Positions 18,371 to 57,125 of a stretch of 64,000 bases of DNA are shown here, one piece after another. The stretch comes from Octopus sinensis. Its lineage: Eukaryota. The notes beneath the pieces are model-generated. The model had not been told where the DNA came from. It did no database searches and saw nothing but the letters and a program-made list of their open reading frames with translations. Within the stretch, counting starts at the first letter, position 1, and each line of letters opens with the position of its first letter. The position numbers were made by a program, and so were the translations under genes. The stretch spans positions 13,082,001 through 13,146,000 of the forward strand of contig NC_043002.1 of NCBI RefSeq assembly GCF_006345805.1. The letters are read 5' to 3'.

Positions 18371-19370
18371 CACATCAATAAAAATGAACAACAGTATCTT
18401 AAAAGGTCTACATATTCAATTAATCTCTCTCTTTTTCTCTCTGTCTTTCTCTTCCTCTCTCTCCCTTTCTCACTCTTTCTCTCCCTCTCTCGCCGTTTTT
18501 CTCTCTCTTACTCTCTTCCTTTTATTTTCTCTTTCCGGGGAATTTAGATTTAAACTTATATTGTGTATGTTTGTGTACTCACTTACAGACACACACATGC
18601 ATACACACATACACACACACGCACACAAACAGGCACGCACGCACAGACACACGCACCGGTGTCTGTTTGTGTGTATTCCTTTTACACGATAACTCCTGTG
18701 TAAAGAAAACTTTTTAAAAAATATATCGATCGATAAGACGAATTTCAGACATTACAAAATGGTGATAGACACCAAAGCCATAGAGATCATTGCTCCAGCA
18801 TGACTGTAGTTTAATGACTAATGACGAATAAAGACATAAAGATCAAAAAAATGTCAAAGACATTTACTTACAGACAACGACATGGCTTGGTATGACTCGG
18901 TTCTTGCATTCTTCTGCTACTAAAAATCCCAAATCACAGGTGTTGTTTCTGGTAGAAAACAAAGTACTTTCTGGACACTGCATGGTGGCCACCACGGACC
19001 GGTTGGTGCAGGCCAAGAATTGAGCGCAATTTTCTGGATCTGGATTAATCCATCTGGATCAATGCAAAGTGGATCATCTAAAGAAATGAGAGACGAAGAA
19101 AATTATCCACATGAATTTTTATATATATATATATATATATATCTATATATATTATATATATTATATATATATGTAGGTCCCGGGTTGATTCGGGGTTAAC
19201 CACAGTAAATAAGGTACTCAATCATAGCAGAGTAAAATTAATTTATTATATAGAAGGAGCTTCTACAGGACTAGAACTGTTTCATTCAAGAGAAATCTCA
19301 GGAATAGTTAACAAGATTGTATTGCATTTATACATGATAAATGTTTAAATGCCAATACAATTCTGTTACT

Positions 19371-19421
19371 AGCTTCCTGAAGATTTCTCTTGAATGAAAC
19401 AGTTCTAGTCCTGTAGAAGCT
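19371..19421 (+). ncRNA. Type I hammerhead ribozyme motif in the right arm of a fold-back element
   Basis: Stem I AGCTTC/GAAGCT (6 bp); core CTGAAGA (19377-83); short stem II TTC-TCTT-GAA; GAAA (19396-99); stem III ACAG/CTGT with an 8-nt loop; cleavage triplet GTA (after 19415). Confidence 0.8.
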
Positions 19422-20411
19422 CCTTCTATATAATAAAAATATATATATATATATATATATATATATATATATATATATATATATATATATATATAAATAT
19501 ATATATATATATATCTATATATATATATATATATATATATAGATATATATATATAATATATATATATACATACATACATATATATATATATATATATATA
19601 TATATATATATATATATATATATATATATATATATATATATATATATATATATATATATATATATTATATATATATACAGGCGCAGGAGTGGCTGTGTGG
19701 TAAGTAGCTTGCTTACCAACCACATGGTTCCGAGTTCAGTCCCACTGCGTGGCACCTTGGGAAAATATCTTCTACTATAGCCTCGGGCCAGCTAAAGCTT
19801 TGTGGGTGGATTTGTGTGTATGTGTGTTTGTCCATCCACTATATCTTGACAACCGATGCTGGTATGTTTACGTTCTCATCGTGCGGTCTCGAACTTATTT
19901 GACGCTCCATTTTAAGTACAGTAATATTGTCTCATTCATATCCGTGAATTTCCTCAAGACGTTGTCTATTATAAAGTGAAAAATTATTTTGTCACGCTCC
20001 AGTGTCTACGACACGGACACAGAATAGCTTAGTGTCCAGCGCTTGAAAGAATGTAATTAGATGTAAGCAATTACAGCGTGAATGACACTTATTAGCCATT
20101 CAAAATCACACTAAAACTGTGGCCTTCTCTTAATCATTATGTATTTCCGTGCTCGCGCGTATTGTATGTATGTCTTAACAATCGTCGCACTGTCTGTAAC
20201 TTGATCACTAGTATAGTTTCACTGCAACTGGTCTGAGACAAGGCTGTTGGCGAAAGGGAGATAACAGTTGTAGAGAGTGCGTCCGTTACAGACAGAAGTC
20301 TGTATGTATTTGAAGCTCATTAGACGCTCCCCAGCGAAGCATTGTCTCACACGCTATCTCCAAAATCTAGGAAGAGCTAATATTAATTATAATTATTCCT
20401 TATAGCATAGG

Positions 20412-20720
20412 TGCAGGCGCAATGGCCCAGTGGTTAGGGCAGCGGACTCGTGGTCGTAGGATCGCGGTTTCGATTCCCAGATCGTCGGGCGTTGTGAGTG
20501 TTTATTGAGCGAAAGTACCTAAAAGCTCCACGAGGCTCCGGTAGGGGGTAGTGGCGATCCCTGCTGTACTCTTTCGCTGCAACTTTCTCTCACTCTTTCT
20601 TCTGTTGGCCTGCTCGCTTAGCCAGCGGGGTGGCGACATTTGGAGGCTAAAACAATGCGATTCGCATTGTGACCAGCGATGTGTAGCAACATCTGATATC
20701 CTGGTCGGTCACGGTGGTGG
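20412..20720 (+). mobile_element. tRNA-derived SINE family C
   Basis: Head GGCGCAATGGCCCAGTGGTTAGGGCAGCGGACTC...GTTTCGATTCCC. A near-identical inverted copy lies at about 43490-43800. Confidence 0.85.
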
Positions 20721-21189
20721 TCACCTATAGCAGAGAGACAAATCCTGAAATTTGAGAGATGAGGTGAAACCATTATATCGGTCCCAGTATTTCGCTGGTT
20801 CTTTATTTTATCAATCCGAAAGAACGGAAGACAAAGTTGACCACCTAAGTGATATTTCACCTCCGAACAAAAGATCAAAAATAGCTATCGGAAGTTATTT
20901 TGTCCTATGCTCTGACGGCTGTCCCTATTCACCCATCCATTGTTATAATTTCTTCTAATTCACGTATTAAGCCAGCAATTTTGGATGGAGAAAGTTCGTC
21001 GAAAGGCGCAGGAGTGACTGTGTGGTAGGTACCTTGCTTACCAACCACATGGTTCCGGGCTCAATCCCACTGCGTGGCAGTGTCTTTTACTATAGCCTCG
21101 GGCCGACCAAAGCCTTGTGAGTGGATTTGGTAGACGGAAACGGAAAGAATCCCGTCGTATATATGTTTGTATATATATATATATAAGCT

Positions 21190-54814: not shown

Positions 54815-54937
54815 GATGTAAAGGATGTTACTATGATGGACACTGCTTTTGTAATAATCAAAAAGGCATTTATAAAGGAAAGTATGAATGTAAGACACTT
54901 CAATGCAAAAGGAAAAGTCTAACAATTATTGAAACGT
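54815..54937 (+). CDS. Cys-rich internal exon of the small secreted protein
   Basis: Acceptor TTTTGCAG|GA, donor T|GTAAGT, 123 nt, phase 1 to 1; (G)CKGCYYDGHCFCNNQKGIYKGKYECKTLQCKRKSLTIIET. Confidence 0.75.
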
Positions 54938-55519
54938 GTAAGTAAAAAGTAAATATAATTTTTGGTACCTATAGATTGAAACATGGACATGAGAAGTGTG
55001 TGTGTGTGTGTGTGTGTGTGTGTGTGTGTGTGTGTGTGTGAGAAACAAAAAGAGCTGTTAAACAAACATTTAGTGGGAGTGAAAATATTTTTTTTTAAAT
55101 GTAAAGAAAATAGAAAACTTGGTGCAGAAGTTAAGGCGTCGGTAAGTTCAGGAGGAAATTAGACAATAGCCACCGTTAAATGGACAAATAAAGAATGTGG
55201 CAAAAAGGTGGAGTAAAAATTCTGTCAATGAAAAGCTCTCGTCTTGATCACGTGCCCTTGGTACGAAACCTCAATTTCTGTTATTAATTATAAACCATAA
55301 CAGCTAATGTTTACTTATAAATAAACTAAAGATATTTAGGAGATGGGATGAGGAAAGTTTTATGCAGGAGTGGCTGTGTGGTAAGTAGTTTGCTTACCAA
55401 CCACATGGTTCCGGGTTCAATCCCACTGCGTGGCACCTTGGGCAGGTGTCCTCTACTATAGCCTCGGGTCGGCCAAAGCCTTGTGAGTGGATTTGGTAGA
55501 CAGAAACTAAAACAAGCCC

Positions 55520-55937
55520 AAGGCGACGAGCTGGCAGAAACGTTAGCACACCGGGCAAAATGTGTAGCCGTATTTCGTCTACCATTACGTTCTGAGTTCA
55601 AATTCCGCCGAGATCGACTTTGCCTTTCATCCTTTCGGGGTCGATAAATTAAGTACTAGTTACGCACTGGGGTCGATGTAATCGACTTAATACCTATGTC
55701 TGTCATTGTTTGTTCCCTCTGTGTTTTTAGCCCCTTGTGGGTAGTAAAGAAATAAGTATTTCGTCTGCCGTTACGTTCTGAGTTCAAATTCCGCCGAGGT
55801 CGACTTTACCTTCCATCCTTTCAGGGTCGATAAATTAAGTACTAGTTACACACTGGGGTCGATGTAATTATTTAATCCTTTGTCTGTCCTTGTTTGTCCC
55901 CTCTATGTTTAGCCCCTTGTGGGCAATAAAGAAATAA
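55520..55937 (+). mobile_element. SINE family B (tandem dimer) nested in a family A SINE
   Basis: AGGCGACGAGCTGGCAGAAACGTTAGC...GAGTTCAAATTCC head, flanked by a duplicated AGAAACT(A/G)AAA(C/G)AAGCCCA. More than 10 other family B copies occur (e.g. 5140, 8580, 31450, 58100). Confidence 0.85.
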
Positions 55938-56797
55938 GAAACTGAAAGAAGCCCAACGTATACATATATGTATATATATATATATATATATGTGTGTGTG
56001 TGTGTGTGTGTGTGTGTGTATGTGTATGCTTGTGTGTGTATATGTTTGTATGTTTGTGTTAGTCCCCCACCAACATCGCTTGATAACCGATGCTGGTGTG
56101 TTTACGTCCCCGTAACTTAGCGGTTCGGCACAAGGGGCCGATGGAAAAAGTACTAGGCTTACAACGAATAAGTCCTGGGATCGATTTGCTCGACTAAAGG
56201 CGGTGCTCTAGCATGGCCGCAGTCAAATGACTGAAACATTTAAAAGAATAGAAGAATAAAAGAATATCTTTACACGACGCTTTAGCGACGGGAATGAACG
56301 GAAATGTATTTAACAAACGATAAAATTTTCGTCAAAAATAAACATTAACATTTGAATGCTGGCCACCTCCGATGAAATGATGCAACAATCTAATGTGTCA
56401 CACGTAATTTTTATTTACGTTATCATTTATTCTATATATGTGGCTGTGTGATAAGAAGCTTCCGTGTTCAGTCCCACTGCGTAGCACCTAGAGCATGTGT
56501 CTTCTACTATAATCTCAGGCTGACGAAAGCCTTGTGAGTGGATTTATTAGCCGGAAACTGAACGAATCCCGTTGTATGTGTGTGTGTATTTGTGTATGTG
56601 TCTGTGTATGTGTCTGTGTTTGTCTCCGCTACCGATGTTGATGTGTTCACGTCCTCGTAACTTAGCGGTTCGGCAATAGAACCGATAGAATAAGTTCTAG
56701 GCTTACAAAGAATAAGTCATGGAGCCGATTTGTTCGACTATAGGCGGTGCTCCAGCATGGCTGCAGTCAAATAACTAAAACAAGCAATAGAATATTA

Positions 56798-57125
56798 ATA
56801 TTGTTGTATTTCGGAATGGTCATTTTGCCAGTTTAGCCAATAAAAACACACGCACTATATATTTGGTGTTATTTTGCTTCAGTGATATTTATTTTTTACA
56901 TTAATCTTAATCTTATTTCGGCCAGAGTTCTTTCGTCACACTTCTGTGACCTTGCAAAGGACCACTGATAAGGTCACAGAAGTGTGATGAAAGAACTCTG
57001 GCCGAAATAAGATTAAGATTAATGTAAAAAATAAATAACGCTGAAGCAAAGTAACACCAAATATATAGTGCGTGTGTTTTTATTGGCTAAACTGGCAAAA
57101 TAACCATTCCTAAATACAACAATAT
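56798..57125. mobile_element. 328-bp fold-back (156-bp arms, 16-nt spacer) with a minimal hammerhead motif at its centre
   Basis: GGACCA-CTGATAA-G-GTCAC-AGAAGT-GTGA(T/C)-GAA-AG-AA-CT-C-TGGCC; G8A in this copy. Confidence 0.7.

Follow-up and report, generated by a model that had tools for sequence, protein, structure and literature searches.

Insertions of Penelope-like elements (PLEs) are heavily 5'-truncated and are often found with an inverted truncated copy and a tail at one end, and elements of the Naiad and Hydra types favour (TA)n as a target (PMC8557442). The Poseidon protein, when purified, cuts both strands of DNA and extends them, and reverse transcription starts at two adjacent internal sites, the interval between which corresponds to the tail (PMC11167929). 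Pairs of minimal hammerhead ribozymes, one on each strand and separated by 100-700 bp, are already on record (PMC4209133). Retrozymes, in turn, consist of direct repeats in tandem, from which double self-cleavage yields circular RNAs (PMC7229834; bioRxiv 10.64898/2026.07.22.740005). Here, a stretch of 64,000 nucleotides from Octopus sinensis (NCBI RefSeq assembly GCF_006345805.1, contig NC_043002.1, positions 13,082,001 to 13,146,000 of the forward strand; hereafter the window) was analysed, in which a preliminary description had noted five palindromes. Five palindromic loci of the window, designated P1, P2, P3, P4 and P3b, are probably insertion products of PLEs of the short, (TA)n-targeting Hydra-clade type, with two 5'-truncated 3' ends lying head to head at each locus. 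They are most likely dead-on-arrival twin insertions and not retrozyme-like non-autonomous families. With these loci, new cases are added to a known phenomenon, and nothing known about the element class is altered.

All five palindromes of the preliminary description were found where it had placed them. These are P1 (19242-19437; arms about 90% self-complementary), P2 (35326-37575; a unique centre of 336 nt between arms of 99-100% complementarity), P3 (53712-53833; two arms of about 56 nt, 80-84% complementary), P4 (54232-54470; a homologue of the P2 outer end) and P5 (56798-57125; 156-nt arms, 94-96% complementary). The list was incomplete, as a window-wide census added P3b (53922-54148; 111-nt arms, 91% complementary, with a 5-nt spacer and a (TA)n flank) and unrelated palindromes at about 10155-10505, 26622-26746 and 34880-35186. 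Adjacency to (TA)n in four of the five, as previously claimed, was borne out, the exception being P5; in all, (TA)n is adjoined by P1, P2, P3, P3b, P4 and a single-copy element near 26.7 kb that is described below. The division into about four sequence families was likewise recovered by BLAST, with P4 grouping with P2 (81-83% identity to its outer end) and P1, P3 and P5 each being distinct. P2 is indeed the sole member that codes for protein, and what it retains is merely a C-terminal fragment.

P2 consists of two truncated Penelope-like copies. The left copy (35326-36655, minus strand) is a 5'-truncated element whose 3' end at 35326 adjoins (TA)n. The right copy (36652-37582, plus strand) is more severely 5'-truncated and ends at an internal terminus, ...AGATA, without the tail. 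At the junction the two copies overlap by a 4-nt microhomology, CCTT (36652-36655). The open reading frame (ORF) fragment of the left copy (35909-36658, minus strand) encodes the end of a reverse transcriptase (RT; FLDV, YRKPN), a linker and the start of a GIY-YIG-like nuclease, and is shortened by a frameshift relative to the right copy. The fragment in the right copy (36645-37280, plus strand) encodes the linker and the whole nuclease domain, with IIYEA...KYVGLTEG followed by CxxC...E...N...CxH. The RT core is missing from both copies, and neither is therefore autonomous. The P2 fragments match 32 database proteins at 36-49% identity. Alignment with these relatives gave the motifs YRDDGL, FLDV, YRKPN and SNHPP and a CxCX5C linker, followed in the nuclease by IIYEA...KYVGLTEG.FK.R..H and then CxxC...E...N...CxH, with no CCHH. 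The RT portion kept in P2 is the C-terminus only (FLDV, YRKPN, SNHPP), YRDDGL being seen in the relatives. The nuclease structure predicted with AlphaFold (predicted local distance difference test score 70.5) has the order beta-beta-alpha-alpha-beta-alpha, as expected for GIY-YIG. When all relatives were compared with the window by tblastn, no coding copy besides P2 was found, and there is thus no full-length parent within the window.

The P2 protein likely belongs to the Hydra-clade PLEs, an assignment that is based on motifs read from the alignment, not on phylogeny, and that is graded as likely, not proven, because independent confirmation of the domains failed. Features shared with the Hydra clade (PMC8557442) are the short length (about 2.5 kb for the unit in L004, one of the related loci from other organisms), a single ORF, a C-terminal GIY-YIG-like nuclease without CCHH, the CxCX5C linker, CxxC and CxH around a conserved E and N, DKT in place of DKG in the RT (L004), a hammerhead, insertion at (TA)n, inverted 5'-truncated copies and a one-sided tail. 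The window differs from the clade in that it holds truncated dead copies only, that a linker cysteine has been lost (CSY) and that hammerhead position 4 is C, not U. A further difference, from PLEs in general, is the length of the tail, which is 64-65 nt here whereas 30-40 nt is quoted for PLEs.

The left copy of P4 (54235-54350, minus strand; about 115 nt) is a 5'-truncated member of the P2 family that ends in ...AGATA with no tail, and its right copy (54340-54468, plus strand; about 125 nt) is truncated inside the hammerhead and ends in ...TTATCA at (TA)n. At the junction, inspected by eye, a stretch of 8-10 nt is compatible with both copies. The P2/P4 family thus displays two discrete 3' termini, 64-65 nt apart. 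The tail-less terminus, ...AGATA, is that of the P2 right copy (at 37582) and the P4 left copy (at 54235), and the tailed terminus, ...TTATCA, is that of the P2 left copy (at 35326, tail of 64 nt at 35326-35389, minus strand) and the P4 right copy (at 54468, tail of 65 nt at 54404-54468, plus strand). The two tails are homologous to each other. With this pairing of termini, each palindrome is made of one tailed and one tail-less arm, and (TA)n lies directly beyond each of the four termini. A tail of the P2/P4 type is partly conserved in L001, a relative with only about 45% protein identity.

The preliminary description had placed a CTGAnGA...GAAA...TH motif on the outward-reading strand of every palindrome. 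That string occurs 15 times in the window, where about 6 occurrences are expected, and in one of the five palindromes; it was rejected as a detector because it is too permissive. With Rfam, no hammerhead was found in any of the five palindromes at the gathering score or at E<=10, and none of them reaches Hammerhead_1. A first strict descriptor, which required a hairpin helix III and placed helix II directly after A9, also found nothing; it was wrong for this class because helix III is palindromic and a U stands on each side of helix II. The motif was reinterpreted after the published minimal hammerheads of PLEs, with their long helix II and a helix III palindrome that pairs between copies (PMC4209133). 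A stringent structural descriptor then gave four matches in the window and none in 100 random sequences matched for dinucleotide content. A covariance model, R1, was built solely from related elements of other organisms and run over the window with filters off; it found P1, P2, P3 (partial) and a motif at 26958-27019, and none in P4 or P5. All hammerhead matches in palindromes lie on the outward-reading strand. The strand given in the preliminary description therefore stands, as does its literal pattern in P1, but that pattern is present in P1 only and P5 has no motif.

P1 is made of two arms of about 95 nt, 90% identical, each of which is the 3' end of a hammerhead-bearing element reading outward. 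The motif in the right arm (19371-19421, plus strand) was matched by R1 at 28.7 bits (E 7e-6) and by the descriptor, and its core is intact. It reads AGCUUC-CUGAAGA-U-UUC(UCUU)GAA-U-GAAA-CAG(UUCUAGUC)CUG-U-A/GAAGCU, and the three-helix hammerhead junction is its minimum-energy fold. The left arm carries a remnant (19260-19307, minus strand; 9.5 bits and E 3.7 with R1, together with the alignment of the arms) in which one core base is deleted (CUGA-GA) and helix I is broken. The right side of P1 adjoins a (TA)n tract (19427-19677), which is presumed to be its insertion target. Directly after this tract, from 19679 on the plus strand, begins a repeat with the first letters GGCGCAGGAGTGGCTGTGTGGTAAGTAGCTTGCTTACC, which appears to resemble a tRNA-derived short interspersed nuclear element of octopus genomes, a likeness that would point to a cephalopod host.

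The two hammerhead motifs of P2, in the left arm (35423-35485, minus strand) and the right arm (37486-37548, plus strand), are identical, and each scored 18.7 bits (E 0.006) with R1. The left-arm motif has helix I AGAUAA/UUAUCU, the core CCGAAGA, in which U4 is changed to C, and the helix III palindrome ACUC-A-GAGU; the sense strand was read as AGAUAA-C[C]GAAGA-(31 nt helix II)-GAAA-CUC A GAG-U-U/UUAUCU. In P4 the remnant (54275-54336, minus strand) is recognisable through its homology to P2 alone, with no match to R1; CUGAAGA is intact, whereas the GAAAC of P2 is replaced by GAGAC and the helix III palindrome carries mutations. The arms of P3 hold decayed hammerhead boxes, and AUAACCGAAGA and UGAAACUCAGAGU are common to P3 and P2. 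R1 matched part of the left arm of P3 (53727-53752, minus strand; 15.1 bits, E 0.076, model positions 14-41), covering helix II, GAAA and the helix III palindrome; the core is CCGAAGA, and there is no helix I in register. The right arm has CUGAAAA and GAAC in place of the canonical core.

A hammerhead-bearing single copy that is absent from the preliminary description was found at 26747-27215 (plus strand). This non-palindromic element is non-coding or 5'-truncated and ends in (TA)n. Its motif (26958-27019, plus strand; 19.1 bits and E 0.005 with R1, also matched by the descriptor) has its core intact, and its helix III palindrome, ACGUACGU, is perfect. The arms of P3b match the last 90 nt or so of this element, whose hammerhead lies upstream; truncation of P3b downstream of the hammerhead accounts for its having the same architecture without a ribozyme. 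A near-perfect AT-rich hairpin of 125 nt (26622-26746), which has no hammerhead and no relative within the window, separates the 5' edge of the element from a (TA)n tract. Its sub-threshold match to a plant microRNA family in Rfam is due purely to the hairpin shape.

Across these loci the complete core, C3 U4 G5 A6 N7 G8 A9...G12 A13 A14...U16.1 H17, is present only in the right arm of P1 and in 26958-27019. The deviations are U4 to C in P2, A13 to G in P4, changes in both arms of P3, and the deletion in the left arm of P1; in P5 the core is absent. When folded as homodimers joined at the helix III palindrome, the P2 and 26958 motifs were more stable by 8-12 kcal/mol. Judged by these sequences, the hammerheads in the scars of the window appear to be mostly decayed and without a role. 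The distribution of core position 4 was also noted. CCGAAGA is found in P2 (35472-35478) and in the left arm of P3 (region 53753-53765), CUGAAGA in the older P4 (54324-54330) and CUGAAAA in the right arm of P3. Since this is a CpG-to-TpG difference, the source elements of the P2/P3 lineage may have had C4, with decay "restoring" the canonical U. As a lesser possibility, the P2/P3 lineage may propagate with C at core position 4, and if it does, ribozyme cleavage would be dispensable for that lineage.

The DNA around 11 related proteins from other organisms was compared, and the same minimal hammerhead motif was found at 10 of the 11 loci, either in the 3' untranslated region (UTR) of the ORF or in a flanking or inverted copy. 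The signature of the clade is helix I - CUGAUGA - U - helix II - U - GAAAC - NN N NN - GU - H / helix I. Helix I is wholly different between loci and yet complementary within each, as in UUCGC/GCGAA, ACCC/GGGU, CACUC/GAGUG, UUUAC/GUAAA, GUACAC/GUGUAC and UAUAGC/GCUAUA. Covariation was evident in an alignment of eight sequences, in which 91% of cells pair (64% when shuffled and <=50% when slid) and compensatory changes occur in 10 of 13 pairs. A 13-sequence alignment that includes the window copies gave the same picture, with shuffles over both sets at 60-64% and compensatory changes in 10-11 of the 13 pairs. In L001, L005, L006 and L007, (TA)n follows soon after the hammerhead motif. L004 holds a complete unit of about 2.5 kb, with DKT in the RT and direct hammerheads 2.5 kb apart that flank the ORF. 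Head-to-head pairs with outward hammerheads are also present, namely a small one in L005 (1648-2307), with a tail of about 60 nt on one arm only, and kilobase-sized ones in L007 (1986-4689) and L010 (661-4382). Metagenome scans for further copies returned none for the P1 family and 67 for the P2 pattern, which were at chance level after filtering with the model.

The window motifs share with the minimal hammerheads of PLEs (PMC4209133) the type I topology, a helix I of 4-6 bp, an enlarged helix II, an extra nucleotide after A9 and, in place of a real helix III hairpin, a short palindrome able to pair between two copies. They differ in that U flanks helix II (GA-U...U-GAAA) where the published motifs have a conserved G10.1-C11.1 pair, in that P1 has a true helix III hairpin of 4 bp, and in that none reaches the Rfam Hammerhead_1 threshold. 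A covariance model built from relatives can thus detect a clade hammerhead that Rfam misses, and it is reusable. The only Hammerhead_1 match of Rfam in the region, at 46335-46381 (plus strand), scored 23.2 bits against a threshold of 34 and 11.6 bits with the family covariance model, and has neither (TA)n nor a palindrome nearby. It was set aside as weak in both and could be either a chance match or an old copy that has decayed.

In the favoured scheme, a PLE protein would nick both strands of the self-complementary (TA)n target, and each free 3' end would prime reverse transcription of element RNA. Both complementary DNAs (cDNAs) would stop early and be joined at a short microhomology, the whole being a single event. 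A possible alternative for the near-perfect hairpins with centres of 5-16 nt is a cDNA that folds back and serves as its own template. Reverse transcription would have two start sites, separated by about 65 nt, and this would explain why a single arm carries a tail in P2 and likewise in P4. The hammerhead would be an ordinary part of the 3' UTR and a passenger in every copy whose truncation lies upstream of it. Its presumed role in intact tandem elements, which the literature has not proven, is to trim the RNA of the element. A comparable process, LINE-1 twin priming, was reportedly described by Ostertag and Kazazian in 2001, and in it both target strands are said to prime, with the cDNAs joining at microhomology to give an inverted 5'-truncated insertion. 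The inverted 5'-truncated outcome is the same, but in LINE-1 the inversion lies in one copy, whereas here two 3' ends point outward, and the enzyme here would be a GIY-YIG-type PLE protein of a kind reported to cut and extend both strands. The loci of the window agree with the in vitro report that a Penelope enzyme primes both strands and has two start sites for reverse transcription, given the mixed tailed and tail-less arms in P2, P4 and L005.

Additional evidence on the mode of insertion comes from P3, which is flanked by a 27-nt direct repeat (53678-53704 on the left and 53832-53858 on the right). The repeat is imperfect, with 23 of 27 positions identical, a score that 1% of random comparisons reach, and it represents a long target duplication such as retroelements make. 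At P1, P2, P3b and P4 target duplications are unreadable because they lie in (TA)n.

Several observations weigh against an origin of the palindromes as PLE twin insertions. The Pfam GIY-YIG match of the P2 protein is below the cutoff (16-19.6 bits against 22.6), the nuclease had no sequence match in the PDB and no Foldseek match, and the RT region, represented by that of L004, had no Pfam or PDB sequence match. The sequences that seeded the covariation analysis had first been picked by a descriptor that demanded pairing. No full-length parent was found for the families of P1, P3 and the 26.7 kb element, and their Penelope origin is therefore based on the ribozyme class, the association with (TA)n and the architecture. 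Two independent truncations would not usually leave centres as small as those of P5 and of P1, P3 and P3b (5-10 nt in these last three), for which the fold-back variant would be needed. Lastly, the evidence comes from one 64-kb window of this genome, and the palindromes might conceivably have been amplified as units.

The preliminary description had proposed that the genome hosts retrozyme-like Penelope derivatives, non-autonomous and defined by their ribozymes. On this reading the small palindromes would be self-standing "retro-MITEs" (MITE, miniature inverted-repeat transposable element) that are transcribed and then copied as units by the enzyme of a full-length element. P1, which keeps an intact hammerhead and is predicted to be competent as a monomer, would suit such a unit, the conserved 3' tail could be the site that the enzyme recognises, and non-LTR (long terminal repeat) retrozymes have been proposed to derive from the terminal repeats of PLEs. 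Like metazoan non-LTR retrozymes, the small palindromes are short, non-coding, hammerhead-bearing and related to PLE termini. Retrozymes are defined by tandem hammerheads in the same orientation, however, and none were found in the window, where the motifs are single or in inverted pairs, so that a transcript carries at most one sense ribozyme. Related copies differ, moreover, in truncation point or structure (P4 and P2; P3b and the element at 26.7-27.2 kb; P5 and its relative at 50.9 kb). Within the window, relatives are truncated elsewhere or single in three of three cases, which argues against copying as units. P3b has the architecture without a ribozyme, most cores are mutated, and the "unit" of P2 holds dead coding sequence. 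For these reasons the retrozyme-like families were not upheld, and we regard this reading as unlikely. A related version, in which the mini-palindromes would be mobilisable hairpins whose transcribed fold-back RNAs, bearing tail and hammerhead, are copied by a (TA)n-targeting Penelope enzyme, is considered distinctly unlikely.

Twin insertion by a PLE is also preferred to the view that single 5'-truncated insertions were later duplicated in inverted orientation at the DNA level, by fork switching or by hairpin-mediated repair at (TA)n. Long (TA)n tracts are palindromic and fragile, and unrelated inverted duplications lie nearby, for example the mariner-like pair at 34880-35186, so such an event is conceivable. 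A simple duplication would not yield arms that end at unlike 3' termini, one with the tail and one without, as is seen in P2, P4 and L005. The same layout furthermore recurs in unrelated organisms, and the enzyme extends both strands in vitro. Later duplication is accordingly judged very unlikely. The pair at 34880-35186, which lies just left of P2, has 87-nt arms that are 97% complementary, and its translation (...IERNGDYVEK), for which Pfam gave no match, is presumably like the C-terminus of a mariner transposase.

Finally, it is highly improbable that the palindromes are DNA-transposon MITEs or fold-back elements with hammerhead-like strings arising by chance, because, for all that they share the small size, the non-coding content, the AT-rich flanks, the hairpin potential and the look of terminal inverted repeats with such elements, that their (TA)n flanks could conceal TA duplications, that nothing in P5 contradicts this origin and that other unrelated palindromes occur in the window, P2 and P4 can be shown to be ends of retroelements whose coding sense points outward, the truncation is unequal and the tail one-sided, the motif was found by a model from other organisms and by chance zero times under the stringent descriptor, the 27-nt duplication at P3 is unlike the short fixed duplications of DNA transposons, and there is no known transposase partner.

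P5 has to be considered separately. No hammerhead, no (TA)n and no Penelope link was found for it, nor a clear target duplication. It was rejected as a hammerhead carrier, since its box reads GUGAUGA/GUGACGA, GAAA is not conserved and no model matches; a relative reads AUGAUGA. This relative of the P5 arm is a single copy (50957-51107, plus strand; 74% identity) that shares the terminal sequence GAAATAYAACAATAT, from which it follows that P5 is likewise composed of the end of a dispersed element. On present evidence P5 stands apart from the other palindromes. The earlier proposal of Penelope-derived 3' ends joined head to head, with a minimal type I hammerhead on the outward strand, is supported for P1 to P4 and not supported for P5.

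These results bear on annotation. Palindromes of 120-330 bp beside (TA)n in this genome are better read as Penelope-like scars than as MITEs or microRNA-like hairpins; mislabelling as MITEs, which the preliminary description had foreseen, is possible, and the sub-threshold microRNA matches that Rfam gives on the palindromes reflect the hairpin shape only. Another palindrome, of about 350 bp (10155-10505; 146-nt arms, 90% complementary, with a 22-nt spacer), has GC-rich outer ends, GCGCGACTGTTAT, no adjoining (TA)n and no relation to the others. An assembly gap of 100 N (59718-59817) lies amid inverted repeats and (TA)n-rich sequence (59383-60521), and the palindromic structure may have caused the break in the assembly.

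The window is otherwise eukaryotic in character, with many (TA)n and (CA)n microsatellites and an intron-like context. An ORF at 22689-23360 (plus strand; 223 amino acids) has a sub-threshold zf-RVT match (E 9e-4) and is probably the C-terminal part of a non-LTR retrotransposon protein. Another, at 24679-25116 (minus strand), has a signal-peptide-like start and a sub-threshold match to the chitin-binding peritrophin-A domain (E 0.003), after which comes a long stretch of isoleucines encoded by an (ATT)n repeat; this ORF is possibly a host exon. A U6 small nuclear RNA gene is located at 13019-13119 (plus strand), with a score of 87.5 bits against a gathering score of 44 and a 3-nt deletion in the alignment of the conserved ACAGAGA region.

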